64,000 nucleotides of DNA, from assembly GCA_011109175.1 (NCBI GenBank), contig RDEW01000106.1, forward strand, positions 17,314 to 81,313. Direction: 5' to 3'. This document shows positions 322 to 64,000 of the stretch, piece by piece. The stretch comes from Dicyema japonicum (lineage: Eukaryota > Animalia > Dicyemida). Numbering within the stretch: position 1 is the stretch's first letter; every line of letters begins with the position of its first letter. Position numbers and translations under genes: made by a program. Under the pieces are notes generated by a model that was not told the origin of the DNA, did not search any database, and worked only from the letters and a program-made list of their open reading frames with translations.

Positions 322-2200
322 ATGTGGTCCACCAATTCAAAAAATTCAAAAGGATTTGGCAACGCCCAGAGGGCTTCTAATGCCTTCCCAAAAAGGACCA
401 TTAGACCCTTTCCTCCTGGGGTCATCATCGACCCCCGGCGATGTGGTTCAAAAAAGTCCAAACATTCCCGGAGAAAGCCCTCAGCCCACTGTGGAGAAAG
501 GAAATTTACTGCTCTCCAATTGAACATCAACGGAATTAAAGGCAAGGTCAGGGAACTCCGTTCAATCCTGTCAAATATCGACGTGGCTATGATCCAAGAA
601 ACTAAACTCCGCATGAATGATCCCAATCCTTCATTCCCTGCATACGAGGCTATCAGGATGGACCGTAAAAAGAGAAGAGGGGGTGGACTACTTACTCAAT
701 TCAAAAAGAACCTGAAATGCAAAGACATTAGTTCGGAAGTGAGGAAACTTGTTGGAAATGGCGAGGTTACTGAGGCAATTGGAATCTCGCTTGGGACAAC
801 AAAAGGAACTCTGTGCTCGTGCTATCTACGAAGTGATCATCAAATGTGGAGATGTAAACTCAAAGCACCCCTTATGGTTGTCAACCCAACAGGCCGACAC
901 GAGAGGGAAGCTATTGTTATTGAAAACGGACTCCTAACGATACTGAATGACCCAGCGAAAAATACAAGGACCCCACTCAGAGAGACGAATCAGCTTACCT
1001 CTCCCGACGTAGCAATCTGCTCCACATCACTTTCATCGAAAATTACCTGGTCAGTCTTCTACGAAACAAGTAGCGATCATAACCCGATTGTGATGAAGAT
1101 CACGAGAGAAGCCAAAGTTAGGAGAACATCTACTAGCTATAACTACAAAGCTGCTAATTGGGAATTGTATCGCACAATCTCGGATGATAGACTGAAGAAT
1201 TGTTACTTGGACAGCTTCAAATCGCTAAAAAAGCGATCAAATACTTTACTTGCACAATCCTAGAATCGAGATAATTGGCAATTCCCAAGCATCGTCTACA
1301 TTCCTCTAATGGTCGAGGGAAGTCGGCATTGATTAAAAAAAGAAATCACCTCAAAAAATCTAATTGGATCACATTAGAAACGAAACTCCGGATCAGAGCT
1401 CTAAACGACGAAATAAAGGCCAGACAGTTCAAGGCCCAGAAATTGAAGTGGAATCGGATTCTTACATAGGTAAATCGTAACCGTAGTACCGGAGAAGTGT
1501 GGAAAGCCATTCGAAACGTTGCAAATGGCGAAGAAACTTGATGACTATACGAGACCTTAACAAATTGATAAAATTCTACACAAAACTTCGTAAAAAACAC
1601 AGGAAGTCGGCAGTGCTTCTCTCTTCACGACGAAAACTGAAGAAGGATTCTAGCCCAGTATATTTCTCGGATGAAGACGTGAAGAATGCGCTGTGTTTTA
1701 CAAGAACAACGTACTCTTCCGGTCTCGACAACATTCCAGTAGTGTTATTGAAGAATCTTGGAGATTTGGGAGTCGGTTTTATAACGTCGATTTTCAACTA
1801 TTCAATTAATTGGGATGTAATACCGTTGTTATGGAACCAAGCCAACATCCGACCTACACTGAAACATGGAAAACCTAAGGAAGGTCCGGCATCATTTAGA
1901 CCTGTGTTAACCTGGACCGACTCAACGCCTGGGTAATGAAGAACCGACTCGCGGTAAATTCCAGAAAGTCGGTCACGTCTATGTTTACTTCGGACAAAAG
2001 GTTGGGGAAGAAGACTGGCACCTTAAAATTGGACAACGTTGAAATCCCCTTCAGCAAATGTCAGAAGATCCTGGGCCTAACACTGGATACGCACTTATGT
2101 TTGTCACCACACGTGGAAAGCATTGTTCTGAAGTGCGAGAAGAAAATCAATGTATTGAAATGTTTATCAGGAATATGGAAAACTTCAGAGTCACGGAACG
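322..2200 (+). mobile_element. Decayed APE-endonuclease/RT non-LTR retrotransposon (Jockey/I-like LINE), internally deleted
   Basis: APE motifs QLNING..IQETKL..SDH and NYKAANW in ORF 322-1263; RT motif W.QANIRP..K.GK...SFRPV at ~1830-1910; then a jump to the late RT region (KILGLTLD); stops and frameshifts between ORFs. Confidence 0.85.
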
Positions 2201-2204
2201 GTGG

Positions 2205-2465
2205 AGTTGTGGGAGACACAGAACAGGGCCGACTTTCTGGAGGCCCTCATAAAACCACCCACAGTCGTCGAAAATTTCTGGACGACGTACTCCCAACTCG
2301 TACCGTCAGTTCTGTGTTCGACAATAAAACTTCTATCATCCTGACAGAATCCTTATTAAGGAATCCCCGCAAAACATCAATAAGCTTTCCTCGGCGATTT
2401 GTGTCAAAAGCTCTTGAGATGTCGATCACCAAAATTGTAGTCGCACTCTCAAATCTTTGGTAACT
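2205..2465 (-). mobile_element. RTE-like reverse transcriptase fragment
   Basis: ORF 2247-2432: IDISRAFDT...IEVLLSNTELTVRVG; related to the fragment at 51676-51984. Confidence 0.6.
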
Positions 2466-5977: not shown

Positions 5978-7914
5978 AAGTCTAACTCTTTTTGGAACGG
6001 ACCTCAAGGGTGGAACACCTCTGTTTTTGATACACCCTCAGGATTTGGAACACTTTGTAAATTTTATTAGAAAATTAATAAAATCCTTACAAAAAGACCT
6101 CGTTTTGGAACAGGTATAATTATTTTAATTTAAAATTAAATTTTACAGTTTCTATATTTTACTATAATTAATTTTTAAATCACGTGCATATTTTTGTTCA
6201 TTTTTTTGCTTGTCTTAAAGTTATCTACACCTTTTATGGGCTTAAACTACGACAAAAAAGTTGAAATTGCTAAACTTCTTTCAAAAAAGGAACATTCAAT
6301 TTGAAAACTCACGAGAATGTTTGACACAAGTATCGGAACAATCTCTAGAATTAAGAGAAACATTGTTCCATTTACAAAAAGTGGACAGATTTATTCAAAT
6401 GCAGAGACTTCAGAGTCAGTCACTAGTGAATAGCATAAACTTTTGGATTCAAAAGTGTTGGATGTATTTCAACACCTAAGAAAACAAAACGTTCCAAAAA
6501 TTTTTTATTCAAAGCAATGAAGAATTATTTGGTTTCAAGCAGAGCAAAGAAAAAGTAACTGTCTTGCTCTGCTGCAGCCATACAGGAGAAAAATTAGACC
6601 CTTTGATCATTGGAAAGTTTCGTAATCCAAGGTGCTTCAAGAATTTCCTCCCGTCAAGCCACAATGTTGTCTATTCTTCATCCAAAAATGCATGGATGAC
6701 AAAAGATGTGTTTAGATGTTGGCTTCATAGAATTAATAAACATTTTTTTATCACAAAATCGGTAAATTATTCTGTTATTGGACAATGGCATAGTGGTTAG
6801 GTGTCGGGCTAAAGTGACTTAGGTTATTATTAATTGTTAGGAAAAAGTGTTTAGCGAACACCAATCCGAGGATCTTAATGGTCATTTCATCAATGAATAA
6901 ATTGAAAAAGCTATCGAATATGTTTTAAAAGAAAATGACCCTGAGTCAGAGCAAAATTTTTATAATGAAATTGAGGCTGGAACAGCCATTGATAACATAA
7001 ATAAAATTGAGGAAAACATTTTAAAAATGTTGCGGATTGTCTTTTTTTATTTAACCCAAGACCACGGTAAAACAAAACTAATTATCACGTGATCCCGATG
7101 CATTCTAGCAGAGACCTCATCTTTGCCCGGTGTTCTTCCTTCGTGCCCGCGCATGAACGTACAGGCTGCCTGAATTTTCAGGGCCACCTTCCCGTGATCT
7201 GGAGTCTAGTCTCATAAGAGCCTCCAGAGGCGTAGGTTCGGGTCGATGATCTTCACAAATCCAACGCTCCGTTACTCTGTAAGCCCTCTTTTGCATTTCC
7301 TCATTTTTGTCCAAGATATGGACGGACCCCACGAGGCGCATGTATATGAGAAACATGGCTCGATGTATTGTTTGTATTCGTTCATCAAGACTGGGTGAGT
7401 ACCACTCTTCCATATTCCCGATAAACTTTTCAATACGTTCAGTTTTCTCGCATTTCAATAGAATGTTTTCTACGTGAGGTGTTAAACAGAGATGCATATC
7501 AATTGTTACACCCAAGATCCTTTGACATCTGTGGAAAGGGATACCGACGTTGTTTAACTTCAAGGTGACTGTCTTCCTTCCCAATCTTTTGTCCGAGGTA
7601 AATAGTGACGTGGACGACTTTTCTGCATTCACCACGAGCCGGTTTTCCATTATCCAGGCATTAAGCCTGTTCAGGTAAATTTGTATAATTTAAAAAAAAT
7701 ATTCATGCGCAATTTAAAATTTAAATATGGTTATGGACAAAAAATTACTGATTACTTTAAACAATGTTAGTTTTCGTTAAATTCTAGGGTTTTAATCAAC
7801 GAAGTATAGTTGTGCACTCAATAATAAATTTTTGTACGATTTTACGAGTAACTTCTATTTTTGGAACAACCATTGTTTTTGAAACAATTGGTGTTCCAAA
7901 TGGAGGCTAGACTG
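5978..7914 (+). mobile_element. pogo/Tigger (CENP-B family) DNA transposon remnant with nested insertions
   Basis: DDE_1 segment VTVLLCC..TGEKLDPLIIGK..NPRCFK..AWMT..F..WL (6540-6750); imperfect TIRs aagtctaactctttttggaac / gttccaaatggaggctagactg flanked by TA. Confidence 0.8.
7050..7680 (-). mobile_element. APE-type LINE 3' fragment nested in the Tigger remnant
   Basis: ORF 7117-7650 matches 1936-2200 (NRL.VN..KS..LFTSDKRLG..ILGVT.D.HLC..PHVE); shares its 3' UTR with 9390-9500 and 19465-19530. Confidence 0.85.
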
Positions 7915-8170
7915 TATATCCAGTTTCCACTTTTACAGAAACAGAGTCCATCCGGAATCTGCATAAAGCGTAAAAGACGTCCATACCTGCTGTTGTGGAA
8001 ACCCCTCCAGTGGAGTAGAGGAGAGAAAATTATCCTTTTCTTACCGGCCTGAGCGGCACCTATACAGGTAGATCACATGACGCCTGTCTTATAAGAAAGG
8101 AAAGGGGAGGAACAAGCAAAACAGTCAGAAACTTTGAACCAATTAGCACCACATGGCCCATGCAACGAAG
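7913..8170. repeat. Unclassified dispersed repeat (family X), copy 1
   Basis: tatccagtttccacttttacag...gtggaaacccctccagtggagt...gatcacatgacgc recurs at 41507-41775 and partially at 30495-30640. Confidence 0.75.
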
Positions 8171-8226
8171 GACAAGATATAACTTATAAATAAGACAAAC
8201 TATTAAATATATTTTAATATCAAAAA

Positions 8227-9275
8227 TCACCGTGTTTTGGTAAATTTAATATAATCTTCCTCAGAAAGTCCGACTTTCTCACAAAACAAAGGAATCCTTT
8301 TCTCAGAAAAAGTACTCAATGGAATGAATCCTGGGAGACGGGGACAGTATTTGTTCATTCCAAATGTCTTCAACAACTCATGTCTCTCGTTCAGGAAGGT
8401 CAGGGATCGTCTAAGGACGTTTGGGTAAGACAAGATGTGTTCTGTGGGGACTTTCATCACATCAACCACAAATTTGGCCCTCTCATGCAGAAAGTCGGGG
8501 TCTACAAATAAGAGGACAATAAACTTGTGAAATATATACGAGGACATTTCTCCATAATCATCACTCGGTCATCCAAATTGGGAAACCCGACTGTTAGGGC
8601 AAGTCTGTCATTGACTAGTCGGAAGAAATGAGGTTTGTATGACAAGATTCCTCGGTGACTTTAATATCAGGGACCTCATTTGGAAGGCTGAGGTAAAGTA
8701 TAAAGAGATACAGTTCAGATTGAGCGTCGAACTCACAGTTGATAGAATTTTCTTGATATCGGGGATTTCGAGAATGAACAGAGGGGGATATTTGCTAGCC
8801 ATCAATCCAAAGTCATATTTGGTCACTTTAAGAGTCTCAATCAAAAAATCCTGTTGGAAACCAAGATCCTCGATATTCTTGGACAAAATTAGAGGAGTTC
8901 GGTTAATCAAATCAGTCAAATCTGGTCCCTCAATGTTAAGACCTTTGAAGAAGTCAATATAAGGGACAAAGTCACGGTCATAGTTGAACAAGACGATTTT
9001 ATCTGCGTAACGAAATAATAGAAACCAGCCACATGCTTGTATTTGTCAAAAAGGAAGATGTCTATTTTGTGAAGTTTTACCAGATTCTGAAGAAATGCGG
9101 ACTTATCGAAATAAGTCGATAAAGTAAATGAAGGGTTAGGTGCTAACTTGCTGACTTGTGGTATAAAGAAAGGACGGGAGAGAAGGGAGACTATTTGTTG
9201 GGAGGAGTTTTCAAGGTAGTTGACATTTGATAGACCGGTAGTGAGTCTTCGGTATAATAATCCACCACAAAACAT
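8227..9275 (-). CDS. MTERF3: Mitochondrial transcription termination factor 3, ~317 aa, 4 introns (23, 24, 25, 23 nt)
   Basis: Spliced model is in frame (introns include 9003-9025 and 8688-8711); STYFDKSAFLQNLVKL and C-terminal ERHELLKTFG..KYCP..PGFIPL..FCEKV...DYIKFTKT match MTERF3; N-terminus resembles a presequence. Confidence 0.9.
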
Positions 9276-9389
9276 TCAAATCAAAGAAATGATGTATATT
9301 TTAAAATTTATAATTTTAAGAAATATATTTTTTACTCATAAGTAATTTGTTAGTTCAAAGGCATTTTTGGTTGGTGACGTGGTTCCTGG

Positions 9390-9840
9390 CAAGTATTTAT
9401 TTAAACAACCCAAGACCACGGTCAAAAATCAAAACTAACTATCACACGATCTTGATATGTTCGAATAAAGTCCTCATCTTTGCCCGATGTTCCTCTTTCG
9501 ATCTCACACATGTATGTATCGGGCGGCTGTTTGTAGAGGTGCCTTGAGTCATCCCGGAATCTAGCCGCATGAGGACTTCTAGAGGAGTCGGTCCAGATCC
9601 ATGTTCCCCCCCCACGAGTCCATCGCTTCGTAAATTTGAACGCTCTCCTCTTCATTTCCTCCACTTTTCTTTTATTTGTATTTGGATGGAGGATCCCCAG
9701 AAACGCATGCATATGAGATACATGGCTCGATGTACTGCTTGTAAGTTTTCAGGTATAAATTTGTCTTATCAACCCGGACAGTATCAACAGCCCGGACGCT
9801 ATCACATACGACAATAATTAACCCATTATCACATTGAGGA
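9390..9840 (-). mobile_element. APE-type LINE 3' fragment
   Basis: Same 3' region and UTR family as 7050-7680 (gatcgtgtgatagttagttttgatttttgaccgtggtcttggg). Confidence 0.75.
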
Positions 9841-12341: not shown

Positions 12342-13376
12342 TTAAATGTTCCTAACCAGAGTGGACCAAAGTTCCATATTTTGACGAGATTTGACAGCAA
12401 AAAAGAAAAAGATTGAAACTGATTGGAGAACAAACATTTCCACCAACATACATTTTTGCGGAGACACGTGGTATGTTAAAGGCATCATAGCAGACAAACT
12501 GATGACGTAATTCGGGTTGTAAATTATGAAAAATAGCACCAAATTCTCCAGAAAAATAGGATTTTCAAGAGTGATTTTAGGAAATGTTAACCGCGGAGAT
12601 TTTTTAAGAAACGTAACCCCCAAGTTGGAAAACCAAAGTGAGAGCAAATAAGCTAATATTCGCGACTGAATATAAAAGTTGATAACGGAAAGGATTACGC
12701 AGCAGCAAAACTTTGAAATCAGCCAATATTGGGGTTTCAGCAAAAACAGAGTCTCTACCAAAACAGCACACAACAGATTAAAAATACAAAACTGAACGGA
12801 ATCAGAGGTTTTACAGAGTTGAGAGTCCATAACCGCAATTAATCAAGTTTTTGCTAATTTCAAGAATATTTGGACCATGAACAGTCAATCACCCCAATGA
12901 ATATAAGGACAATAGTAACGCACAAATGCCCCCAAGAAATAAAAAACGTGGCAGAATACCGTGAGAATGAATCCAACAATCCCGATATATATCAGATGGT
13001 ATTCGAATCGGTTCATTCCCCTCAACAATCGCGCTACTAAACCCACGTGGTGTTTGTAAAGTATAGCCGCTGAGAAATTGTTATTAGATTTTTCTAATTG
13101 CGCCAAAATGAACTTTTGGGAGATCAATCGTTTAGATTCCGTTGATATCCCAGAGAGTTTGCGGAGTGAGTTTATGCAGTTTTGTACTCCAATACTGTTC
13201 TCCTGAATATATCGATCTTTGATTTCTGCCAATAAATTTCTAAGAAACATAGACGCCGGGACAGGTGGTTTCGAAGTTGTTGGGGAGAAGATCCTCGATC
13301 GGAAATACAAATTCATAAAAAGAGTCAAAACCCCCAGTAAACGAGACAATGTTGAGGCAAAATCAATTTTTCTCAC
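12342..13376 (-). CDS. Putative multi-pass membrane protein in two tandem ORFs; weak resemblance to GPI transamidase subunit GPAA1
   Basis: Two consecutive 163- and 162-aa ORFs on one strand with several hydrophobic segments; RYIQENSIG, LLRGMNRFE and YWLISK weakly recall GPAA1 motifs; the junction between the ORFs is unresolved. Confidence 0.35.
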
Positions 13377-16079: not shown

Positions 16080-16270
16080 TGAAATGGAGGAATAAGTGGA
16101 AAATCGCTTCGCTTCCTAAAGAAACTTGGACGCTTAGCTACAATAAAAAGCCACGACGCACGTGAGACACGGTGGCTACTCCAGTTGATCTCTGTTGCAA
16201 TCGTGAGTGGCAACGCAACGTCGATAATGTCGGCGGGGTCCACTTTGGATGGATGGCAGTTTTAAATAAA
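16080..16270 (+). mobile_element. CRE-clade 3' end, 5'-truncated
   Basis: Aligns by eye with 54610-54775 (ggaataagtggaaaatcgctt...ggcaacgcaacgtcgat). Confidence 0.75.
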
Positions 16271-19745: not shown

Positions 19746-20829
19746 ATTCTTTCCATCAATGATTCACCTGCTAACTGATTGAATTTATACAAGGATGGTT
19801 AGAACAGTTTAAAAATTTGTTTAAATTGAAAAAAAATCATCATGATGAGTCATAACCCAAAATTATGATCGTTCTGCAATATGTGAATTTCTTAATGCAA
19901 CCAAAACTATATCCAATTGTAGAAAACCTACCACGTGGTGTCATGTAATGCCATGTGGATGCTTATTAATTCTAGGAGCTACTGAGTTTTGTGAACATCA
20001 TAGCTTCTCAAAGTGTCTTTTTCCTTGGAGGAAGAAATAGTCTCCGGATGGAGTAGAGTGAACGGTTCTCCTTCTATATTATTAGCAACATTCGTATATT
20101 AACTTTCGTTCATACGTGCAACATCTGACAAAATCCTCCAAGTTCTTTCAATTTGGGACTGAACTCTGATAAGTCGTACATCCCGTACATCCCGTACATC
20201 CCACACTTCCATTGTTCAGTACTTTGCTTTCGTATGTCTCATCAGTCAAAAAATAAAAAATGACACAAAATAACACATAAACTTTTTTTGAAATTATAAA
20301 ACATTTATATATTAATTTTTTCAAATAAATTATTTCGATTCAATTTCATATTTTCTAAATTATGAAGATTGGTTCCAAACATGAAAACGTAACTATATTT
20401 TGTTATATTTCTACGTTGCATGCTGATTATTGCAAAATTGAAATATTATTATTCAAATGAAACCAGGCAACTTAGAACCCTACTCTCTATACATAAGAGT
20501 AGGAACACCATACTAACGTTGGCGCCACGTGGCATTTTCACGTGGCATATCAATTGAAGATTCATAGATATTGAGGGACAAATTAATAATTTTTTAATTG
20601 AAATGAGCAAATGTTGAATTTTTGTGCTATCCTTTATTTTTAAGTGGAATTTTCAAGGAACCTCGTCTATCCTTAAAAGTGCATTTATTTGAACCACCAA
20701 ACCACATTATGAGTCTCTTTAAATGTCAATATGAATGATTGTATGAGAATTTTTATTAATAAAGTATGGCTTTTCAAAAATGGAAAAATTGTTAAAACAT
20801 AATTACATAATATAAATCAATAAAACACA

Positions 20830-28350: not shown

Positions 28351-28612
28351 TAAATGACTTTCCATTCAAGAAATATTTTTTAATTTTTTGCCATAACGTG
28401 GAGATTAGATTTAGTTGTTGATTAGGAATGAGATTAGGTATTGATTATGGTTGATGTTGAAAATTGCTTTATGGATAAGATCACAATTATGTATTTTTAG
28501 GAAAGGAATTTGAATTCGTCAAAGTTATGGTTAAATTAGAATTAGATATGGATGGTTAAGGGATAGGTTTTATGATATTTTTAAATTTAAGAATAAAACT
28601 TACGGTTAAAAG

Positions 28613-33299: not shown

Positions 33300-34603
33300 A
33301 AGTGAGATAGAGATTGTAGATAATTTTTTTGCTAACAGTTAGAAATAATTTCAGCATACATTACTCCATGCATCTGAGATTATTGTTACCACTTATCACA
33401 AGAGGTAGATTCTCCTGACAATGCTATGAATTTTAATTGATGCCTCTCTTTGAAAGGGAAGAACCTTGAGATACTTCATAGGCAAGGGGTCTCTTGATTA
33501 GTTAGTCTTGACGTTCCCTTCTTTGTGTTAAATAATGACCATTCAAAATGCACTGAATTGACGGCGATGTAAGAAATCATTAGATATGAATAAAGGAATC
33601 CTCTTTCGATAAACGGTAGAATATTTTTTATTCGAAAAATAGTTCCCTTGTTTGCATTGTAAATGATAGATAAACTCCTTTCAGAATGTTCCTTTTTTAA
33701 GATATGATCTGCAATCTTCAATTTTGTTTCATGATTCAAACGCACCACAATCAACAAAAAAAATTTGAATGAATCGTGACTTTTAAAATATTTATTTTTA
33801 AAATCGGTTAAATAAAATCATATAATTATTTTAAATAATAAAAAAGTAATGCCCCAACTCGAGGTGCTAAATTTAATCGACTTGCCAGACATTTGGTATA
33901 AAATTTATAGATCGCCCCAAAACGGAGTTTTCCCCGGTTCTAGGTAAATTCATCGCGGTAAATTATCGCCGTAATTTCATCGCTGGTAAATTCATCGCTG
34001 GTAAATTCATCGCCGGTAAATTCAAGCGACCACGTGGGTTCTTCAAAAAGAGGTCGAAATTTTGATTTTTATATTATCATTAAAATGTAATTTTGGAGAT
34101 TAATTTGACGATATGAGTCACGTGGCCAGATCCCAAGATAGAAGAAATTTGAAAACCTCAATTCTCCAAATAGTGTTAGATTTACTCAACGATGTGCACC
34201 ACACGTGTGTGTATTGGTTAAAGTGATAGAAAATTATTGATTATCTTACTGATTATTGATTAATAACAAAGGTCAAACTTTAGAAAAAATAGGTCCCCTC
34301 TCTTCAGTTTTCATAGTCCTACCGTCACGGATACATGATTCATATCGCCGAATAATCTCCAAAATCGCAATTTAACTATAATATAAAAAATCAAATTTCG
34401 ACCTCTTCTATTTAGACACCAGCCCACGTGGTTCTTTGATTCAACTGGGATGAATTTACCTCGCGATGAATTTACCTAGCGATGAATTTACCGGCGATGA
34501 TAATTTACCTTGCGATGAATTTACCGGCGATGAATTTACCGGTTACCGTTTTCCCCAAAAAGAGATGCCCTACCTCGGAGGTGCCCTGAATATAGGTCGA
34601 CTG
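33300..34603 (-). mobile_element. pogo/Tigger 5' remnant interrupted by a MULE foldback
   Basis: TIR TA|cagtcgacctatattc at 34603; psq/CENP-B HTH-like ORF 33476-33757; left boundary uncertain. Confidence 0.6.
33936..34547. mobile_element. Non-autonomous MULE-type foldback element
   Basis: Perfect 9-bp TSD gttttcccc (33927-33935 and 34548-34556); ~180-bp TIRs built from 15-bp repeats (ggcgatgaatttacc); GG...CC termini. Confidence 0.85.
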
Positions 34604-36799: not shown

Positions 36800-39284
36800 A
36801 TGATCAACTCGAACGGATCTAATGAAAAACACGATGGTTCAATACAAAAAGCTGAAAAGTCTGTATATGAACCAACAGAGCACGTGCTAAACTCAAGTCA
36901 TTTACAGAAAATGACGGAATATAAACGAATGTATTACATGTCTGTCATAAATCCTAAACAATTTTGGGGACAAATTGCAAGACAATTTTACTGGAAAAAT
37001 TTTGAAGACAACAACAATGTCACGTGGAACTTTGATATATCAAAAGGTCCCATCTTTACAAGATGGTTCAGGGGAGCCAAAACAAATATGAGCTATAATT
37101 GCCTCGACCGGCATATTATCAATGGACGTGGGACAGAGTGGCTTTCTTTTGGTGAGATTTACCCTTAATAATTTTGTAGGGAAGGAAATGATCCCTCTGA
37201 TAGCAGAAAAATCACATACAAGCAGCTTCATCAGCAAGTTTGTAAACTGGCAAATGTGCTAAAATCAAAAGGTTATTTTCTAAACACAATAATACCACAT
37301 GTGCCACGCCTTATACACCTAAACCTCTAATTACCTACACATTAATACATTCTGTAGGGTTAAAGAAGGGAGACACTGTTTCTATCTACATGCCCATGAT
37401 CCCCGAACTCATAGTGGCAATGCTGGCGTGTGCTAGACTTGGAATTATTCACTCAATTATTGTAATTTTGCTTAATTAGTCAGTTTGCTGGATTTTCGGC
37501 AAATTCTCTCTGTGTTCGGTTTATTAGTGCAAAGCCGAAATTGGTGATCACTGCTGGTTTATAATAGTGTTACCATTAGATGCCTTTTGGCGGGGGACAA
37601 AACTGATAAATTTAAAAAAGATATGTGATGAAGGAATCGAATTGTACGAAAAACAGTAGAATATATTTTTATACGAATAAAGGGGCAATTCCATTATTGG
37701 TGTGATATGGAAGAGACATTTGAATCCAGGCCCTCATCAGACGGCTAAGGAAGAACTGGGATCTCGACCTTACAATGTGGAGGTACCTTTAAGCTTAAAT
37801 GAAAGATAAATATTAAAAAAGGCAGAGATACTTCGTGGGATAAGGCAATGGAGAAAGTGAGTGTTTTATGTGACCCCGTTTGGCTTGATGCGGAAGACCC
37901 TTTATTTATGCTTCACACAAGGTTGATTCCTTTGCTTAGAATTAGCGGTTCTACGGGAATTCCTAAGGCAATTTTGCATACAAACGGGGGATACATGTTA
38001 TATACAGCCACCACATTCAAATATTCGTTTGACTACAATCAACGAGACATTTACTGGTGTACCGCGGACCTCGGTTGGATCACAGGACATTCTTACATAT
38101 GCTATGGTCCTCTTCTAAACTGCGCACGGAGTGTTATGGTTACCTTGCATGTAAACATCGGCTAGTTTGAGGGGGTAATGACATTCCCAGACGTCAGCAG
38201 ATTTTGGAGAATTTGCGATAAATATGAAGTGAATCAGTTCTACACATCTCCCACTGCTATTCGGTCACTAATGTCATACGACGAGAGTTACGTGACAGAG
38301 TAATCTGCCTTGAGATTATTTCGCAGGACAAGCAACCGTGATTCCCTCAGAATTATCGGAACTGTGGGGGAGCCAATAAATCCTGACGTTTGGGAGTGGT
38401 ATTACAGAGTAGTAGGAAAATCTCGTTGCGCAGTAATCGACACATATTGGCAGACAGAAACAGTTTTTTTAATTTTCCATTTTGTAGGGAGGGCACATTA
38501 TCACCCCCATGCCATGCTTTAAGGCCAAGCCAGGATCAGCTGTAAATGTTACTCAAACATTTTAGACTCTTCCGTTTTTCGGGATTGTGCCCGTGATTCT
38601 GGACGATAACGGAAAGAACTCAAAGGGAAGGCTGATGGTTACCTGGTATAGCCTTACTCTGAGATTAGGGAGTCAAACAAGCCTGGCCTGGGATGATGAG
38701 GACTATTTATGGAGATTATGAACGTTTTAAGAAAACTTACTTTGAACGATTCCCAGGGTACTACATTACTGGGGATGGTTTAATCACACGTGACTTTGTT
38801 AGGCGCTCATCGAGACGATGATGGATATTTCTGGATAACGGGCAGAATTGACGACATGCTCAACGTGTCTGGACATTTACTGAGCACTGCTGAAGTTGAG
38901 GCTGTTCTGGTGCAACATCCCAGCGTCGTTGAAGCTGCTGCAGTGACTGCTCCTCATAGTATTAAGGGAGAGTGCATATATTGCTTCGTTTCACTCCACC
39001 AGGGAGAGGAATTTACTCCACAAATCGAAAAGGAAATAAGAATGGAAGGTAAAAACAGGAGTCATTTAGTTCGCAATACGATCGGTCCGTTTGCAGCGCC
39101 AGAATATGTACAGCACGCCAAGGCATTGCCAAAAACACGATCAGGAAAAATAATCAGACGCGTTTTGCGTCAAATTGCAAAGGGATCGACAGAATTTGGG
39201 GATCTCTCCTCCATAAACGACTATTCCGTCATCGCTGATCTTCAGGCTGGGTACGAACTAATCCTTCGATCAAAGCAAGCATAA
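36800..39284 (+). CDS. ACSS2: Acetyl-CoA synthetase (ACSS2-like), ~693 aa, 14 introns (13 of 21-28 nt, one of 86 nt); needs +1 base at 37130-37132 and at 38613-38615
   Basis: [65 protein letters not shown] and [10 protein letters not shown] motifs; spliced length 2080+2 nt gives 694 codons. Confidence 0.95.
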
Positions 39285-45038: not shown

Positions 45039-45071
45039 ACAAATTTTATTTTTTTTCAATTTCTATTAAAA

Positions 45072-46328: not shown

Positions 46329-46439
46329 AATTTCTATTAAAATAATTTCAAAAATTGTGGCCAATTAATAATAAGAACTGTCTTAAATAATAGAACGTTT
46401 TCCCAGGCACTCCTGTCTTAACATGACATTAAAGAATTC

Positions 46440-53242: not shown

Positions 53243-53834
53243 ATGGACAAATCAGTTCTTGTTGTGTTCGACTTGGGTGTCTAATTTTATTCACTAATAG
53301 ACTACACGCTATGGAATTGCTATATTGAGTGTGTCTCCCACCGACTCTTCAGAAATGGGTTCTTATTCTTTTTGATAGAGGACGAGTTATTGGGGACATT
53401 CAGAAGTACTCCTACAAGGACTCGACCAGAATTCTTGAGAAATACTCCACTATATATCTGCTCGCAGTCGCCTCCAGGTATTTGTTGTGGTGATCTCCCA
53501 GGACAATTGACCTATTGGGGGCTGAAGACATGCTGAAATCTCTAAAATGGGATAGATTCTTTACAGAGACCGTGATTAAGCCACGTGACAAGATCTATCA
53601 CTTTGAAATGTTATCTAACATGGTTATTCCAGACTGAGAGAACGGTTATCGATTCCCTTCGAGAAGATGATCTTCTTTGACGATGAATACCAGAATATCG
53701 AGGATGTTTCGTCTCTGGGTTTGGTAGTCTTCATAATTCTAGGGGTTACTGCTGTTTTTGTGGAAGACGGCGTCACTATGGAGTTTATGGATAAACACAT
53801 TAATGACTTTATTAGCAAGGCTAACAAATTATAA
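53243..53834 (+). CDS. MDP1: Magnesium-dependent phosphatase 1 (HAD IIIC), 158 aa, 5 introns (24, 20, 24, 23, 24 nt); absent from the ORF track
   Basis: Splicing yields VVFDLDYTLW...AVASRT...DKIYHFE...IPFEKMIFFDDE.QNI.DVS.LGVT; 477 nt in frame. Confidence 0.92.
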
Positions 53835-53929
53835 AGTTATTCTTAAACACGTGTGTTATCTTATAACTAGAATTTTATCAAGTCATTACTAAACACGTGT
53901 CTGGGATCTTGGGACTATATAATTTTATA

Positions 53930-55181
53930 AAAATTCACTCACATCCAGCTATTCTTTTCCTTGTGGAGGTGGAAAAGTCACGTTTCGACCGTTTCTATCT
54001 TGGAACCTGCCCACGTGGTCCCTATCGCGGAATTGATCTCCAAAGTCTCGTGTTAACACTTCGTGGACATATCTTGTTTCGGAGTTGCTTTGTTATCAGG
54101 AAGATTTCACTTTTCCCCATTTGAGCCTCCTACAAAATTGGTTGGAGACGAACAGATGCACTAATTTACAAAATCTAGTATTGAGTGTCATAATTGTTGT
54201 GGCTATTGGTCTTAATAATCGGCATCCAATTCATTAGAGTCAATATTAGTAGGGGACATATCGTATTATCAAGAGAATTTAAAAACTCAGTCGGATATTG
54301 AAACATCACAGTATTGAACTTTGTTTTGTGATATTTCACGTAATAAATTTATTTTGTCTCAATACCTGAACCTGTTGGCCTGGACAGAGGAGATGGAAAA
54401 CGTCCAGGTAGGATCACAATTTTCCATTCGAAGAAGGGAAACCTTTGGTCTGGGATGCTACTTGTGTCGACCCGCTCTGCCCATCCAACATTGTCAGGAG
54501 CGCGGTAGACACACTCAATGCCGCGGAAAAAAACGATGAGGGCAAAGGAAAAGAAATACGAAGCCCTACAAGATTGATTCGCCGCGTTCTATCCCACTAT
54601 GGTCGAGACAACTAACGGAATAAGTGGAAAATCGCTTCCCTTCCTAATGAAACTTGGACGCCTAGCTACGCTAAAAAGCTACAAAACATGTGAGATCCGG
54701 TGGTTTTTCCAGTTGATCTCTGTTGAGGGCCAACGCAACGTCGATAGTGTCAGCAAGGTCCACTTTGGATGCCTTGTTATTTAATTATCAAATTGATATT
54801 TTTTCGTCTCAATATTTTCAGTCCCAGAAAATAGATGAAAAGAAATTCAATACTTTTCTTAAACATCAATATGTCTCAGGCACGTGCGCTATCGATAAGA
54901 TACTAATAACCACATACATTGCGAATAAAATTGTCCAATCATAATTACAAAGACTAGGACTTATCAAAATCTCGAGCACGTGTCTATACAGTGCTATTCT
55001 ATATGAATGCCAGTACTTATGCATTACAATGACTAGGATCCAATTTTTAGTCACGTGTACTCCATCACTGTCATTTTAAATCCTAACACCCAGGTACCCA
55101 TCTCCCAAGAGTAAATTACTCCACAAAAATAGTATCCACTGATAAGTCGTCAATCACAAAAATCGATGACAACACAGTCAT
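53930..55181 (-). pseudogene. Possible mu-adaptin (AP-3 mu-like) longin-domain gene, frameshifted and interrupted by a CRE insertion
   Basis: MTVLSSIFVIDD...IFVE, VP...LRKVLNFFSSIF and SLDN..P..IDSNEL recall the AP mu N-terminus; no clean spliced model obtained. Confidence 0.35.
54365..54805 (+). mobile_element. CRE-clade 3' end with 9-bp TSD
   Basis: TSD gtctcaata at 54356-54364 and 54806-54814; EPVGLDRGDGKRP..FPFEEGKPLVWDATCVD. Confidence 0.85.
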
Positions 55182-55237
55182 TTTAAAAACAAAATATTAA
55201 CATTTACTTTCTTATCGCATCCTGACTGGCCACAAAC

Positions 55238-56570
55238 CTACAAATCAATAGAAAAGTCAAACATGCACAAGTCCTCAAAGCACTGACAAACCAACCCGAA
55301 TCTATCCTCATTCAACGGTCTCTCCACAATTTTAGGAAATACAACTGTCAATGCAACCCACCACTTACACAACAATCTAGCAAAGACATCAATTCCCAAG
55401 GTCAGGGACGGATGATCACACTCCATGTACTCCTCACTACACAGCTCGAACCCTTTGAGCTCACCAAGAAGCTCTACGTGCTTGCTTTGAGTCGAGAGAG
55501 AACATCGGAGTCGATTTTTAATCTTGTCAGAGCAGATGTTTAAGTCTATGCCCAGCAGACTAGTCACTCGGACGAACAAGTCCCCAACTTTTACGTCACT
55601 CCCAATTCGCCTCCTCTGGGCTTCCTTCTCCGCTGTTGTGAGCAACCAGTCCTCCCCATAGTGATCGAACATGTCCCTCATATTAGTCACAAATTCCATG
55701 GTGAGTGCCAATCTGACATTAAAATCAACACAACCTTGCTCGAGCACCTTCCACGTGGGTCTCTCTAATAATCCAAGCACACGTTTCCACAAAGTATTGC
55801 TCCAACAGGTTTATCACATTCAGTTTCTTGCTGACAGGGCAACTGTCTCTTCTGGAGTACCTACTCACGACTCCATTTCTAGCAAAATTGGCAAGGTCAG
55901 GCGGAATAAATTGGGATAGTCGCTAAAATAAGCCACGTGACAACACTTCCGTAGGAATTCTCTTCCCAGACGACGTTTTTTCCAGAATCCTGCAAATTCT
56001 CACTCTCCTTTCGCTCAGCGTGGGTTTTTTTCCTTATACAATTCAATTTTCTGTGTTCCCTCTTTCGTTGGAGAGAATTCTTCTTTCTTGCACGAATATA
56101 AATGTAGTGTTTGGTCCCACGAGGCTCTCAAGATCGAAGAGTATGTTGTATCCGCCATTCCAAACCCTCGAGCAAACCTTCTAATATATAAAAGGGATAA
56201 CCTGGTCTTGTAAGCTGAGATCTTTTTGAGGAAAAACTGGACCTCATAGTTGTATGGAATGAGACAGTCGTGGGAGATGACTCGACTGTAACTAGACACG
56301 TGAAACAACAAAACCACTCCTTGGGATCATTTTCAGCATGGATCAGGTAGTTGGTGGTCCCGTCTCTTTTCGCAGGCAGAACTTGGAGAATCTATTAACG
56401 TTACATTGATGAAAATAAGCTGAAAAACAGCCAGTAACAGCAAAAAGGGGGAAATAGCAGAGAACACTAACCAAAGCCTTCTTGAAAGACGTCTCAAGGG
56501 GATTCTCTTCAAGAAAGCTTACGACTTGAGCACCAATTTCGAAAAGAGAGAAAGCACAACGTTTAGACAT
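55238..56570 (-). CDS. MSL3: MSL3-like MRG-family protein (chromo-barrel plus MRG domain); several 20-30 nt introns; central exons only partly resolved
   Basis: FEIGAQVVSF.EENP, YLIH, NVINLLEQYF, MEFVTNMRDMFDH..DWLL..AEKEAQ and PS..LG..FARLL match MSL3/MRG15 blocks. Confidence 0.7.
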
Positions 56571-56654
56571 GAAAGATAATAATTGTATAATTAAACATTA
56601 ATTAAACAAATAAATTAAATATTATTTTATCATATATATATTTTCAAGTGTGCT
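56571..56654. promoter_or_regulatory. 84-bp AT-rich divergent intergenic region (bidirectional promoter candidate)
   Basis: Lies between the ATG at 56570 (-) and the ATG at 56655 (+). Confidence 0.6.
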
Positions 56655-58780
56655 ATGTCCTACAAATTCTGCAAAAAGTTTGAGCCCAATCGCTTCAGTC
56701 GAATCCGCTGCCAGAACTGCTTCGCGGCCAAGAACCAGCACTCCTCCGAGGCCCTTGAGCAGCCAACTGTAGTAATTAATTTAAAACAAGGTCGACGTAC
56801 GGGCGATTCATCGTGGATATCTTTTTATCAGCCATGACACCGACTTTTCCACCAATCTGGCACGTGCTCGGGTTTGGGGACTCTTTTACCCTAGAGGTGG
56901 ATTCGACGGTTTTTTGTAATTTTCAGCGACGCTCATGTCAAATATTTCCTCGACGAAAACGTAGACGAGATCCCCTTAGCTGACTTGAACCTGAATGACC
57001 TTGTTGAAGTCCAGGATGCCGAAGAGATCACAACTCACGCTAATTCCGCGGTCCTCCGTTTCAAAAACTCTGACTTTTATGTGAAAGGAGTCAGTCGTGA
57101 AGAAATCCGACGGTTTGGGTTCGTTAATCACGCTTAGCTGGAGGAAGATCTTCAACGAGTTCATAACCGACTATAAAACCGAGAAGAAAAGTCCCGGAAT
57201 TCGTACAATTAGCAAAATTCAATCTGCTGATCGGGAAACCGCAAAAATCTCCCAATCTGGGGATTCTTGGATTTCCGTAGAAATGATTCCTCCCAAAGTT
57301 TATTCAGTCGAGCATCTGAACCCAAAGCTGTCTGAATCTCCCACGAGATGTAACCTCTACGGTGACAGTGCCGAACTTGAGGTCCCGTTAATTCTAATTC
57401 CAGGGTCTTTTCTACCAAAAGAGTGGGTGGCTGATGCTGAGCGACGGAAATGTATTTTTTTGTTAAAATTGGCAGGAATGGATGAAGTGCTGGTGTAAAC
57501 TGAAGAATGGACAACTTTCGATCAAAATGGAAGGGGACTCCGTGGTCACTCGGTTGGTGGACGTCAAAAAGTGCGTCAGAGTGGTGGAGACCTTGCTTCC
57601 ATTTAACTATGGTTTCTCTCTTGACGTTTGGTTTTTTTATTTCCGGCAGACAGTGGATGATTCACTGATGTTTTCAGCCACCACGGAATCGTCACGTGAC
57701 AGCTGGCAGAGCATGTTAGATTCGATAATTGTCCACGGGGCGGTTCATTCTGGCCGACCAAAGAGTCCAGTGATGGAAACGAAGGACAGTGGGGTCGAAA
57801 CCCCGAACTTCGATTTCGTTCAGGATCCTTTTCTGCAGCCTTGTTCTGTAATTGAGCGAGAGGAACCGTCAGTGTCGAGTCTGCACAGTCAGATTGTGAC
57901 TCTACAGTCTCAGTTGACCCAAGTCCAGGCGAATTTCACCTCCCACTGCAATCAGTATTGTGCTGAGCGGGAGAGGTCGGTAGAACAAATCAACTCACTC
58001 GAGAACCAAAAGTGACCCCCTAGTTATAATCCCAGATCTGAGCTTAACAGGCGTTTGGAAGACGTCCTGGAGCAATTTGACAAGCTGAACGAAGAGAAAG
58101 ACCAGATTGAGAGGTCCTATCTGGAAGCGAGGAAGCTGTTGGAGCAGAGGACAGAGATGTACGAGATGCTGAAGGAACGGGCCTCCAAGATGAACCCAAT
58201 CTCGGACGATGAGCCTACTGAGGTCGGGCTAGATGAGTACTCATTGGTGGTTTAAGGCAGGATTTATTCTCTTGAGGATATGCCAGTGAGGGAGACAGAC
58301 AAGGATGTGGTTGGGACTCTCGTGGCGGTAGTTAAGGCGAGGGATATCAACATTGCATACCTAAAATCTCACTTTCGCACGTTTCGAAGAACTTGTCGGA
58401 GTTCCACAAGCAGCTGATGACGAGCATTGATAAATACAAGACGACCAAGGATCTACTAAAGGCTGAGAACGAGAGGATCGCCAGGATGGTGTCGAAGTCT
58501 CTGGAGGAGATTGAGAATGATGAGCGAGTGGGTGGGTCGATAAGTGACTGCAAACTGATTCACGATCTCAAGGTGGCCCTATGTGTGAAGGATTTTGAGA
58601 CTCAGAGGCTGAGAGCCCACGTGCTGATGTTGGAGGACGAGATTAGTCTGGTTTTGGCGGTAATCTTTGAATTATTGGAAGCACGAGGAGAAGACGATGA
58701 GAATGTATAGACTTTGTCTTCATGAGAAGAATGAATTGACGAATCTTTACAATCAAAGACTGTCGGCTATTATCAGGTGA
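56655..58780 (+). CDS. MPRIP: MPRIP/TRIOBP/outspread-family protein (N-terminal Cys motif, 2 PH domains, coiled coil); at least 7 introns of 22-25 nt; one central junction near 58230-58380 unresolved
   Basis: CKKFEPNRFSRIRCQNCF matches CRKFQANIFNKSKCQNCF; RRWIRRFFVIF..HVKYFLDE (PH1); KSGWLML..EWMKCW (PH2); C-terminal coiled coil. Confidence 0.85.
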
Positions 58781-59184
58781 CATAGTTAGGCTTTTTCAAT
58801 TAAATTTTTCATTGTGTTTATTAGACTTTTTCCCGCTTTGTTTATACCTCAGCAGTTATCGCATCCTTGGACTTGAAGGAAGTGCCGTCCAGGGGAACTT
58901 TTTTGGATGGTTGACATTCTAGATGAGCTCCAATGGGAGTGGTATAATTTTAAAATATTTCGCCGTTTGAATTGTTATTTTTAAAATATTAAAAATCGAC
59001 AGGATTTTCCATTTTCAAAGAATTTTAATGATATCTGAATACTCACAATTAGGACAATCACAAATATGACCTAAAAAATTAAAACTATAAGACCTTAAAA
59101 ATTAAATACGACCTTAATAATTTCGTGCAGTTAATTTTTTTTTAATTTATTAAATAATTAATTCATTAAGTAAAAAAGTGAGTA

Positions 59185-59440
59185 ATTGGTCATATAGCGG
59201 CCGTCCTGACTGTGTGGCTATTCCCTCTTAGGATGGGGAGCGAGATTCCCTCAAATATCCAACAGCGCTCACGGGGTACTCCTGATCGTGTAGAAATCCG
59301 ATTTCTTAGCTGACTCGAATTCCAGCGTCGCAGGCTCAATGTAACCAGACGTCTCAACGGCGAGTGGGAGAAATTTATTGACAAAAGCATCAAATAATTT
59401 TACCCTTTCATCATTAAAGTTTCTATCCTTTTCGAGCATT
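59185..59440 (-). mobile_element. CRE-clade 3' end
   Basis: FLPLAVETSG...IPLPIL.GNSHTV. Confidence 0.7.
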
Positions 59441-61121: not shown

Positions 61122-62514
61122 GTAATATTACTTCGTAGTTGTTTTTGTAATTTTAATAAGGACTAATTCTATTATTTAATATAATTTTAGATAACGACTA
61201 CATTCCCTCAGTTGACCAAACTATCAGTGATATATCGAAAGTCAGATTAAAGCAACGTCCATTATCTACCGCTAGTTTATCAGTTACATTTATTACGGAA
61301 GTTCATACCCTCAACTGGAAAGCAAATGATTGTCCTTGTGTTCATAATTTTTTATCAAGAACTCGACTGCTGCCACAATTAAGTGAGACACTGTAAAGAC
61401 TAGAATGGAAAAATAGTGTTGTCTTTATCGTACTTTCAGTCTTCCATTGCAAATGTCAATGGAATCATATTGGATCGTTGAGAAATCGATTATGTTAGTG
61501 CACCCTTCCAAATAAAAGATCAACAAGATCAATTGATAAGCTTGATGATTTTTATAAATATATTTTCGATGTTGTTATGCAGATTAAGTCCAAGTAAGAA
61601 TTAAACATGGTGGTGAATCAAACTTGATGGGAACCCAAGTAAGAATTAAACCCCTTCTCGCATTTTCGATAAAATTTTCTGTTTTTTATAAAAGAAATTT
61701 ATGTTTTCACATATATTTATACGATTTCGCAGATCAGCCAATTTTTCCAACTCTATAATAAATGCATGTAAAAACTCAAAAAAGCTTCTGTCAGTTACCT
61801 TTGGTATAAATTTTCTGTACTTCTGCATAGAAAAAAGTAAAACGATATTCAATACCCAAACAAGTTTTGTAAACTTTATTGTTCAATTTATGCAAGGAAA
61901 TCATATTCGAGTAAGCATTAGTTACCTCATGATCCTAGAGTCGGTTGATGGGATGAGAAAATCAGATATTTTACTGTAGCACCTGTGAAATAGTAATAAA
62001 ATGACCTGTCAGTTTGAAATGTTTGTTAGACAAAAAATTCAATTAAAGCTGTTGTTAGAAAATTGGTGAGTTGATAGTAAATTCACCAGGAAATTTTCTA
62101 ATAACAGTCTTAACTTTTTCAATGACTTTATTGATTGAACGACAAAGTATTTTATTCAAAAACTCAAAAAATTAAAAATAAAAATTTTTTTACCCAGTTT
62201 TACTTTTTTTGACTTTATAATTTTTGATTCATGTAATATTAAAAATCACATTTTATAAGTTTTAAACAATCTTAAAAAAACATAAACAAAAATTGCCCGA
62301 CTAATAATAATGGACTACCGTTCATATGGAGGAACATTGTAATTAACAGACTTAATGCAGAATTAACCTTTACATCCAAAGGTTTAAGATATGGCGTTTT
62401 TTTTTCAGGTATAAACAGTACGTCAGTATTCTTGTTTAGTTCGTTAGTTATGGATTCCTTTTTATGGACTTCAAAAAATCCATATATAATAAAGACTTTT
62501 TATTAGAAAAAATA

Positions 62515-62585
62515 TCGTGCCAAATTTTTCCGAAAATAAGCCTCAAATATTTCGGAAGGGCTTATTTTCGGAAAACCCCGGTATT
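62515..62585. mobile_element. Miniature pogo-type inverted-repeat element
   Basis: Perfect 17-bp stem ttttccgaaaataagcc / ggcttattttcggaaaa with a 16-nt loop. Confidence 0.5.
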
Positions 62586-64000
62586 AGAAAATTTATAAAT
62601 CGACCAAATAGTTTTTTATTTATTATAAAACATACGATAATGAAATGTCGACTTTTATAAAAAATCAGTGAGGAGATTTCCCATGTTCTGATTTTTCTGC
62701 GAAATCAAGTTTCCCTTGACTCATAGCTATTTTGTAAGAATTAATGCAACAAATTCTTGTGCTTAATCGTTTTCTTGTGTCAGTCAATAAAATATTTTTT
62801 ATAATTGTTAATTTTTACATGGCTTGCAATAGAATCACTTATCGAAGCTATAACAAAATTCTTCTTTAAATTGACAAATATTTTCTTTTTAATCTAAATT
62901 GAGACGGTTTGAACGTGGCATAACAAGGAATAGTAATTTTACACGTGTTTAATATTTTAAAATTAAAAATGGCATTTATGGCAAATAAAATGAATTATGG
63001 CATTTAACACCAAAATAGAAAAAATGGCACGTCAGGGCAGCTTCTACATAACCGTTACTATATTTTCTTTCCTAAATAAATTCTTTGACTTCTTCAAGGT
63101 AAAACATTTTTAAAAATTATATAATTTAACTCGTTAATAAAAAATGACCATTCCTTAAAAATTGCATTTATGGCAAAAGTTGCCCTAGTCATAACTAATT
63201 AATCCAAGGAAGCAACCCAAGGGAGAACATGTTCTTTTGTCCGAAAATATATTTACCCTTATCCCAATTTTAATGATTAGAAAGTGACGCTATTGATCGG
63301 GAAACCCTATAAAGTGATAAGTCTCCATTTTGGCCTGCAGGCATGAGAGTTACCTCTCATAATCGCAGGTCCAAAATTTAACATTGAGATCTATAAAGGG
63401 CTATTTAAAATCGTCTCTCGTTGGGCACTTACACTAGGATTCGAGGATCATGCCTTTGGGTGTCCACCTTAAATGAGGATCGTACAATATTTCAGACCAC
63501 TCAACCTTCCCTTTATCTAAAAAAAACACTCAGGAAAATCCCACATCCGACAAAAGACCTAACCTGGACAAAAAATATACATGATTTTGTGTTTAAGAAC
63601 CCTCAAAGAGAACAAGATACAGGAGCTCAGATCCTCTGAGATTAGCGCTTCAGAACTGCTATTTCCGAGGGCCATCAGAGTGAAATTTTCTCGTTTAAGA
63701 AGTGTACATCATCAGAATCTGACTGGGATAATAGTTCGGGATCTCTTTGCTTACCCTGGACCACCAGGGCTCGGTGGATCTCTGGGAGCATCTTGTTTTT
63801 TGAATACCACCAGTTTCATAAAAGTTACCGAAACTAGGATTAATAATTTAATTTAATTCAGAACAGGGGGATAGAACGGAAAAGTCCATTACTGTCGGTG
63901 TCTTTACTCATATGCACTTAATAGTTTATTTCAAGATCTTCTCAAAATTTTTTTTAATGCAATGATGACTATTTGGTGGACTCTGAAGCATTCAGAGAAT

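Follow-up and report, generated by a model that had tools for sequence, protein, structure and literature searches.

CACGTG is an over-represented, dispersed palindrome in a 64-kb window of the Dicyema japonicum genome

Bacteria have drives that act at the level of DNA words, examples being HIP1, Chi and the uptake sequences. Short words of this kind, Chi and the DNA uptake sequences that Neisseria and Haemophilus use, occur at ~0.2-1 per kb and owe their enrichment to DNA-processing machinery and not to gene regulation. They are non-palindromic, show a strand or orientation bias and need RecBCD or natural transformation. The very-short-patch repair of E. coli is a sequence-specific repair bias that alters the abundance of CCWGG-related words; its effect is of small size and comes with depletion of the neighbour that the mismatch gives rise to. 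Biases in oligonucleotide abundance across animal genomes are usually ascribed to mutation context (CpG decay) or to repeats. E-boxes function in promoters and enhancers, and to our knowledge no genome-wide over-representation of an E-box has been described; we also know of no precedent for a eukaryotic word enriched through protection or biased repair. Orphan methyltransferases are associated with HIP1 (PMC4390886, PMC6105098), which was reported to be quasi-periodic and conserved (PMC13756078). The earlier note on the DNA analysed here was correct in describing HIP1 as a context-independent enrichment of a palindrome that has been linked to methylation (PMC4390886). The searchable literature holds no link between dicyemids and CACGTG, no iterated palindrome described in a eukaryote and no earlier report of an iterated CACGTG in an animal.

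The window, a 64-kb stretch of Dicyema japonicum DNA, was scanned whole for exact matches and compared with shuffled sequence. It contains 46 CACGTG sites with starts from 2110 to 62942, spanning 2110..62947; here and below, features are given without strand unless one is stated. The coordinates listed in the earlier note were all correct, and the list was complete and free of false entries; the GC content, put there at ~35%, was measured as 37.5%. The density is about 1 per 1.4 kb in all kinds of sequence. Dinucleotide-preserving shuffles (n=100) gave 5.80 ± 2.38 sites with a maximum of 11, so that the observed count is ~8 times the expectation. Base composition predicts 7.7 sites, and Markov models of order 1, 2 and 3 predict 5.7, 8.9 and 15.1 respectively; the order-4 model, which already holds the word's own 5-mers, predicts 26.9. 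The Poisson probability of 46 sites is ~4e-26. Merging six paralogous or tandem pairs leaves 40 sites, with a probability of ~1e-20.

CACGTG ranks first among the 2080 hexamer classes, both by the ratio of observed to expected counts and by the order-4 z score. Its one-mismatch neighbours are found at 0.38-1.88x expectation and are not depleted, the transition neighbours CATGTG and CACATG being at 1.4x. The excess is therefore a property of the full hexamer, and the earlier description of the neighbours as near expectation holds. Other CpG palindromes are mildly raised, GACGTC to 2.6x and GTCGAC to 2.45x; the GACGTC count is 17, close to the ~16 given before. Most other palindromes have ratios of about 1 or less. 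With ratios of 0.41 for TACGTA, 1.26 for CGTACG, 1.07 for CATATG and 0 for CGCGCG, a general preference for palindromes, for those containing CpG or for Z-prone hexamers of alternating purines and pyrimidines was rejected. The orthologous acetyl-CoA synthetase (ACS) loci of scallop and nematode, used as controls, have no CACGTG excess. The analysis thus confirms that the over-representation of CACGTG in the window is genuine, hexamer-sharp and dispersed.

The gaps between sites fit an exponential distribution (KS p 0.37, CV 1.1), a Poisson-like scatter rather than a quasi-periodic one, with a surplus of close spacings (9 gaps <150 bp vs 4.7 expected). The count exceeds the local dinucleotide expectation in 15 of the 16 4-kb bins. 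Among 30 ORFs with a length of 100 aa or more, Pfam searches matched only an endonuclease (weakly), mTERF and AMP-binding_C. Because only these three families were matched, a clean partition between host and transposon DNA was impossible, and open-stretch length and intra-window repeats were used as proxies. The window gave no matches in scans for Rfam families and tRNAs. With cut-offs of at least 80, 100 and 150 codons, the density is 0.70-0.87 per kb within open stretches and 0.70-0.74 per kb outside them. Repeat-related DNA holds 28% of the sites, the same share as for random positions. Sites in open stretches fall in all three codon phases (10/5/2), and 17 of them are observed there against 6.1 in synonymous-codon shuffles; none of 400 shuffles attained 17. 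These shuffles, together with the equal density outside ORFs, rule out that a bias in codons or dipeptides is responsible, and the excess within the window persists under both Markov and codon-preserving models. No promoter-type concentration was seen in the window, the ORF, non-ORF and repeat classes being equal and the scatter Poisson-like. The window therefore supports two proposals of the earlier note, that the enrichment does not depend on context, be it ORF, non-ORF, intron or repeat DNA, and that its pattern is not that of promoter E-boxes.

The sites in genes illustrate this independence. An acetyl-CoA synthetase gene has two sites on the + strand (36881..37026) in its first long exon (ORF 36800-37168), the one at 36881 in phase CAC-GTG (His-Val) and the one at 37021 in phase x-ACG-TG (Val-Thr-Trp). 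The last exon of the gene matches AMP-binding_C at 1e-19, and the best identity, 60%, is to animal ACS. Reading of the sequence places another site of this gene (38787..38792, +) midway in a GT..AG intron of 25 nt. Removal of this intron (38776-38800) restores the ACS frame and forms a conserved motif. Both the intron site and the use of three codon phases, pointed out previously, were verified. The densest stretch, which is ORF-rich, has 13 sites in 5.0 kb (53582..58623). This cluster, noticed before at 53.5-58.7 kb and with site starts from 53582 to 58618, is real, with P 1.4e-4 for a fixed window. Its sites in ORFs include 55752 (-), 57693 (+, phase xCA-CGT-G) and 58618 (+, phase CAC-GTG). 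In Logan contigs of four DNA runs, none of the variants listed lies within the 13 sites, and 12 more variants are outside those listed; three of the four runs are from one sample and may be the assembly's own source, and the contigs have no intron joints. The region was present in none of the RNA runs.

The bases next to the hexamer are biased. At position -1 (n=92), C occurs 31 times vs 20.0 expected and T 20 times vs 32.2 expected (p 0.005), and for CCACGTGG the count is 8 vs 0.27 expected. MYC:MAX and MAX:MAX disfavour tCACGTG (PMC5515408). The transcription-factor set of D. japonicum is very small, and HLH is its second-largest family with 14 genes (PMC6736024 supplement). Since the one-mismatch neighbours stay at their low ratios, the full 6-bp palindrome appears to be read, as it is by dimeric proteins. 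The flanks favour CCACGTGG and disfavour TCACGTGA, which would make a bHLH-Zip protein of the Max/Myc type the most plausible reader.

The reading preferred here, tentatively and from sequence evidence, is that a sequence-specific process acting on the DNA itself raises CACGTG, with a bHLH-Zip protein as its most plausible reader. A dimeric protein, most plausibly of the Max/Myc type, would read the duplex hexamer, and its presence on CACGTG in the germ line would tilt the balance between gain and loss. If the rate of loss were several times lower than that of comparable words, or if mismatches were repaired in favour of CACGTG, the word would rise to a new equilibrium everywhere, whether useful to a gene or not. 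Several points count against this proposal. The flank bias is modest and may have other causes, the neighbours are not depleted, and bound transcription-factor sites are usually reported as mutating more, not less. A stronger form, which must be called doubtful, is that CACGTG is a self-maintaining iterated palindrome of an animal nuclear genome, driven by a bHLH-Zip protein via biased repair, conversion or protection. If true, it would be a eukaryotic counterpart of the HIP1 and uptake-sequence drives, with tens of thousands of sites serving no individual gene.

Selection could be at work instead. It is possible, on the unlikely side, that the sites are selected functional E-boxes of a global bHLH-Zip regulator or a chromatin-barrier protein; the candidates would be a general factor resembling USF or Cbf1, or an amplifier of the Myc/Max kind, used everywhere in a genome poor in transcription factors. 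Hexamer specificity and flank bias are both consistent with this, as are the mild clustering of 13 sites in an ORF-rich 5-kb stretch, the surplus of short gaps and the relatively good retention of HLH genes in D. japonicum. The equal densities of ORF-rich, ORF-poor and repeat DNA argue against it, and so do the sites that fall in every codon phase of exons and inside an intron of 25 nt. The D. japonicum genome has 5,012 genes in 67.5 Mb (PMC6736024), and extrapolation from the window gives about ten sites per gene. Weak selection on so many sites would be hard to sustain, the effective population of a parasite being presumably small.

An enzyme could also be responsible, as in a HIP1-like system. 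This would be a methyltransferase, or an enzyme derived from restriction-modification, specific for CACGTG or ACGT and possibly of bacterial origin, whose mark would be coupled to repair or replication so as to favour the palindrome. It counts against such an enzyme that restriction targets are usually avoided, not enriched. The perfect palindrome, the strong excess and the occurrence in all frames and in non-coding DNA would fit it (PMC4390886), and the mild rise of GACGTC and GTCGAC points the same way. No methyltransferase was seen in the 64-kb window, however, the CpG observed/expected ratio is 0.85, the context table has no methylation signature peculiar to ACGT, and the spacing of CACGTG is not quasi-periodic. 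An enzymatic origin of this kind is improbable. The window data reveal no HIP1-like mechanism, and the broad inference of the earlier note, that a sequence-specific modification, repair or DNA-binding process creates or protects CACGTG genome-wide in this lineage, is wide enough not to be contradicted; taken as a whole, the interpretation in that note is supported in part.

Mobile elements might spread the word, either carried within repeat families or duplicated at insertion by elements that target it. Three repeat families in the window have the site in more than one copy. CACGTG is common to the 94%-identical repeat copies 7086 (7086..7091) and 19503, and a third copy, 69-74% identical, has CACACG in its place. 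A SINE-like repeat has the site at 16159..16164 and in its copy at 44291, as seen from repeat comparison and reads. The SINE-like copy at 54617-54771 reads CATGTG; other genomic copies in the reads have CACGTG (loose-end consensus). Words of this family have a depth of 470-1000 times single copy, and from the copies in reads CACGTG appears to be present in most members of this very high-copy family. The site at 2110..2115 (+) lies in phase CAC-GTG in a degenerate LINE-like ORF; a 76%-identical copy at 7408-7679 has CACGTA. A homology search with a LINE ORF gave a best protein identity of 31%, and an exact look-up of one ORF of the window gave no match. Sequence comparison also revealed a foldback-like element (33943..34540) whose inverted arms have 15-16 bp subterminal tandem repeats. 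Two of its sites (34031 and 34425) are within the arms and two (34119 and 34202) between them.

Local duplication accounts for three close pairs, as judged from their flanks. One pair, 13 bp apart, comes from a 13-bp direct duplication (20526..20544). Two others, compared by eye, lie in diverged local duplications and are 46 bp apart (53848..53899, with 17/25 upstream bases common) and 75 bp apart (54977..55057). These repeats and pairs favour spread by mobile elements, but about 36 of the 46 sites have unrelated flanks, with flank information of about zero beyond position -1, and the association with repeats equals that of random positions. Hidden old repeats were rejected as the source on these two grounds. 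No site pair within the window has inverted termini or extended direct flanks, and the single dated insertion has an AT-rich 14-bp target duplication with no E-box within 600 bp, so that target-site duplication by cut-and-paste or CRE elements was rejected for the window. In addition, sites lie inside conserved ACS exons. Spread by mobile elements is thus very unlikely. Pairs of repeat copies retain CACGTG no better than predicted from their overall identity (3 of 9 vs ~2.3), which counts against the preferred reading, but this test has almost no power. The earlier note had taken the young CRE copies at 45-47 kb, empty of sites, as a sign of accumulation with residence time. The absence is true, but it is uninformative (P 0.24-0.40), since zero sites in 1.3-2 kb are expected 24-40% of the time. 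Both 94%-identical repeat copies and, apparently, most SINE-like copies also have the site, and accumulation with time is not supported.

Only a slight chance is given to CACGTG being a cis signal for somatic genome processing, for example a mark for retention or for the licensing of replication. Dicyemids are reported to undergo elimination of chromatin, formation of circular DNA and selective amplification (PMC6543705, citing Noto 2003 and Awata 2006), and a signal for retention or an origin would call for a dense, even scatter. No link between sites and breakpoints was seen in the window, and read depth over the 13-site region is flat, repeats excepted. That the excess is a quirk of this locus, or an artefact that arose in assembly or sequencing, is scarcely credible; although the data are one 64-kb window, nearly all of its 4-kb bins lie above expectation, and contig builds of the four DNA runs agree with the assembly at the checked sites.

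If the excess is genome-wide, a sequence-specific force would act on all germ-line DNA of an animal. D. japonicum, with ~5,000 genes and 14 HLH genes, would then offer a simple system for studying the effects of transcription-factor occupancy on mutation and fixation. Motif-based regulatory inference would be affected as well. E-box counts near genes would be uninformative alone, because of the background excess of CACGTG, and would be meaningless unless that background were taken into account.

The iterated words known elsewhere resemble CACGTG in part. HIP1 (GCGATCGC, cyanobacteria) is likewise a perfect palindrome, far above composition, found in all frames and in non-coding DNA at the order of 1 per kb. 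It differs in being an 8-mer of another sequence and bacterial, with 0 copies in the window, and it is reported as quasi-periodic whereas the scatter of CACGTG is Poisson-like. Chi and the uptake words are also short and iterated, but the word here is a palindrome, and RecBCD or transformation is not applicable to an animal. Unlike the case of very-short-patch repair, the transition neighbours of CACGTG stand at 1.4x here and are not depleted. The class-B E-box bound by Myc/Max, USF, TFE/MITF and Cbf1-type bHLH-Zip dimers has the same core hexamer; it differs in that CACGTG in the window is equally dense in exons, an intron, spacers and repeats. The flanks in the window are alike to those set by the Myc/Max rules, with C favoured and T disfavoured (PMC5515408).

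The excess of CACGTG in the window is real and surprising. All 46 sites listed in the earlier note, spanning 2110-62947, are exact, and a script and a pattern tool found none missed and none extra. The window has 37.5% G+C and a CpG observed/expected ratio of 0.85, and 7.7 sites are expected from its base composition. Markov models of order 1, 2 and 3 predict 5.7, 8.9 and 15.1 sites, and the order-4 model, whose 5-mers are inflated by the word itself, predicts 26.9. Dinucleotide-preserving shuffles (n=100) gave 5.80 ± 2.38 sites with a maximum of 11. CACGTG ranks first among the 2080 reverse-complement hexamer classes, both by observed/expected ratio and by order-4 z-score. The excess is not a single hot spot, since 15 of 16 4-kb bins lie above their own local expectation. 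The flanks of most sites are mutually unrelated, and when the six non-independent pairs are collapsed 40 sites remain (P ~1e-20).

The excess belongs to the complete 6-bp palindrome, because neither its neighbours, nor other E-boxes, nor palindrome classes are comparably raised. The nine classes of one-mismatch neighbours occur at 0.38x-1.88x, near expectation as had been claimed. Other E-boxes (CANNTG), other NACGTN words and most palindromes are of ordinary abundance in the window, where no class-wide enrichment of alternating purine-pyrimidine hexamers or CpG palindromes was found. The next most enriched palindromes, in mostly unique contexts, are GACGTC, far rarer than CACGTG with 17 sites against 6.5 expected (2.6x; ~16 in the earlier count), and GTCGAC, with 16 against 6.5 (2.45x). 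TACGTA, CTTAAG, CCCGGG and GGGCCC are depleted across the whole window, at 0.2-0.4x. Outside the hexamer only position -1 is informative: the 92 half-sites have C 31, A 22, T 20 and G 19, where C 20.0, A 25.6, T 32.2 and G 14.3 are predicted once the C that follows is taken into account (p 0.005). There are 8 copies of CCACGTGG, where 0.27 would be expected.

The gaps between sites are exponential (KS p 0.37, CV 1.1). Gaps under 150 bp are slightly over-abundant (9 vs 4.7 expected, p 0.04), in part because of local duplications. At thresholds of at least 80, 100 and 150 codons, long open reading frames carry 0.70-0.87 sites/kb and the remaining DNA 0.70-0.74/kb, which bears out the claimed independence of context. 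Open stretches with a minimum length of 80 codons, 73 in number, free of mutual overlap and totalling 26.4 kb, contain 17 sites, with all three codon phases occupied (10/5/2). Synonymous shuffling of each stretch gave 6.1 ± 2.05 sites, 0 of 400 shuffles reaching 17, and control words were normal under the same treatment. Reading of the sequence showed that 36881 encodes His-Val and that 37021 belongs to Val-Thr-Trp, both within the first long exon of an acetyl-CoA synthetase gene. The sites at 57693 and 58618 have the phases xCA-CGT-G and CAC-GTG, and the one at 38787 falls in the middle of a GT..AG intron, 25 nt long, of the synthetase gene. This gene, at 36800-39284 (+), has GT..AG introns of ~25-27 nt, the lower limit known for animals. 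In Dicyema japonicum the genome is 36.7% G+C and 49% repeats, and its introns are very short (PMC6736024). Outside the Myxozoa no other animal has introns so short, and Henneguya salminicola, the one myxobolid for which that source states a composition, has 29% G+C (PMC13644364). The window probably fits D. japonicum in its G+C, its intron lengths, its TTAGGG-like array and its abundant LINE- and SINE-like repeats. The dense island of 13 sites at 53582-58618 is a cluster that is real but moderate (fixed-window P 1.4e-4). The site at 28289 lies ~300 bp upstream of an interstitial telomere-like array (28594-28709) of degenerate TTAGGG units with periods 6, 13, 19 and 32; the DNA around the array is unique. 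The longest site-free interval, 7086-12465, contains an ORF at 8608-8991 (-) with an mTERF domain match (2.2e-5) just above the Pfam cut-off.

Accumulation with residence time, which had been read from a CACGTG-free retrotransposon copy at 45-47 kb, is not supported. With a density of 0.72 sites per kb, chance alone leaves 24-40% of stretches of 1.3-2 kb without a site, and the five longest site-free intervals (4.1-5.4 kb) equal the Poisson expectation. Young-looking repeat copies (94% identity) carry CACGTG. Between paralogous copies, most changes in the hexamer are transitions (CACGTA, CATGTG, CACATG), and one older copy has CACACG. The hexamer is kept in 3 of 9 paralogous comparisons against ~2.3 predicted by overall identity, a test without real power. 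The 1.3-kb insertion at 45058-46342, earlier assigned to the CRE clade, has a real, AT-rich 14-bp target duplication, the direct repeat AATTTCTATTAAAA at 45058-45071 and 46330-46343. No E-box was found near this insertion and no Pfam match in its ORFs.

The method shows no excess at the orthologous synthetase locus of scallop (0 sites vs 1.7 expected) or of Toxocara (4 vs 4.9). Logan contigs from four DNA runs, three from one sample and one from another, reproduce the region 53400-59300, which is an independent control only if the assembly came from a different sample. Among the differences listed, all but 12 of the total, none falls inside a CACGTG site.

A perfect 6-bp palindrome of such sharp specificity implies recognition of CACGTG as duplex DNA by a symmetric dimer. 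The word is known to be read by bHLH-Zip proteins and by PmlI-type restriction-modification enzymes. MYC:MAX and MAX:MAX dimers disfavour tCACGTG (PMC5515408), as the lowered T at position -1 would suggest. In the minimal transcription-factor repertoire of D. japonicum, HLH ranks second in size among the families, with 14 genes (PMC6736024). That the sites are spread evenly over exons, an intron, spacers and repeats speaks against ordinary use in promoters and agrees with the earlier view that this is not an E-box promoter pattern. Extrapolated to 67.5 Mb from the density of one window, there would be ~48,000 sites for 5,012 genes. This number and the even scatter tentatively favour a force acting on the DNA as such, possibly through occupancy by an abundant germ-line factor. 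A word lost ~8x more slowly than its peers would be about eightfold enriched everywhere at mutation equilibrium; alternatively, mismatches preferentially repaired towards the word would produce the same enrichment. An abundant germ-line factor occupying CACGTG could cause either the slower loss or the biased repair.

Selection acting on genuine sites bound by a global factor is possible, if somewhat unlikely. A methylation-linked system like HIP1, the highly iterated palindrome of cyanobacteria, is doubtful.

Spread by mobile elements is improbable. With the hexamer masked, the ±100 bp flanks of 13 of the 46 sites match elsewhere in the window, the same rate as random positions (28%, n=599), and no pair of sites in the window encloses inverted termini or extended direct flanks. 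The six interdependent pairs are as follows: 7086/19503 lie in two copies of one repeat (94% identical), 16159/44291 in two copies of a SINE-like repeat, and 34031/34425 in the two arms of a foldback-like element, while 20526/20539, 53848/53894 and 54977/55052 arose by local duplication. In the foldback-like element (33943-34540), the left end carries a subterminal tandem array of 15-bp units and the right end the reverse complement of this array (period 16/33); the arms are ~79% identical, and the element holds four CACGTG sites within 400 bp. Very high-copy repeats lie at 54385-54778, 58719-58915 and 59113-59300, with contig word depths 20-1000x those of single-copy flanks in 4/4 DNA runs. 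The first, SINE-like, has CATGTG here and CACGTG in other genomic copies (word depth 470-1000x single copy). A 69-bp tandem repeat at 31565-31807 (3.5 copies, 80% matches) has related units dispersed at 14348, 22903 and 44723, with up to 5 intra-window copies there. That CACGTG signals somatic chromatin elimination or amplification, processes reported in dicyemids (PMC6543705), is as improbable as spread by mobile elements. A local peculiarity or artefact is the least credible reading, given the excess in nearly every bin.

In the literature searched, neither a comparable excess in dicyemids nor an iterated palindrome in any eukaryote turned up. CACGTG resembles HIP1 in being a dispersed, frame-blind and strongly over-represented palindrome (PMC4390886). 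However, the two differ in sequence and length, HIP1 itself is absent from the window, the spacing of CACGTG is not quasi-periodic and the methyltransferase link that defines HIP1 is hypothetical for CACGTG, so membership cannot be claimed. Although the sites lack the promoter concentration expected of regulatory E-boxes, their core is identical to the canonical E-box, CACGTG, and the public assembly offers a direct test of the excess.
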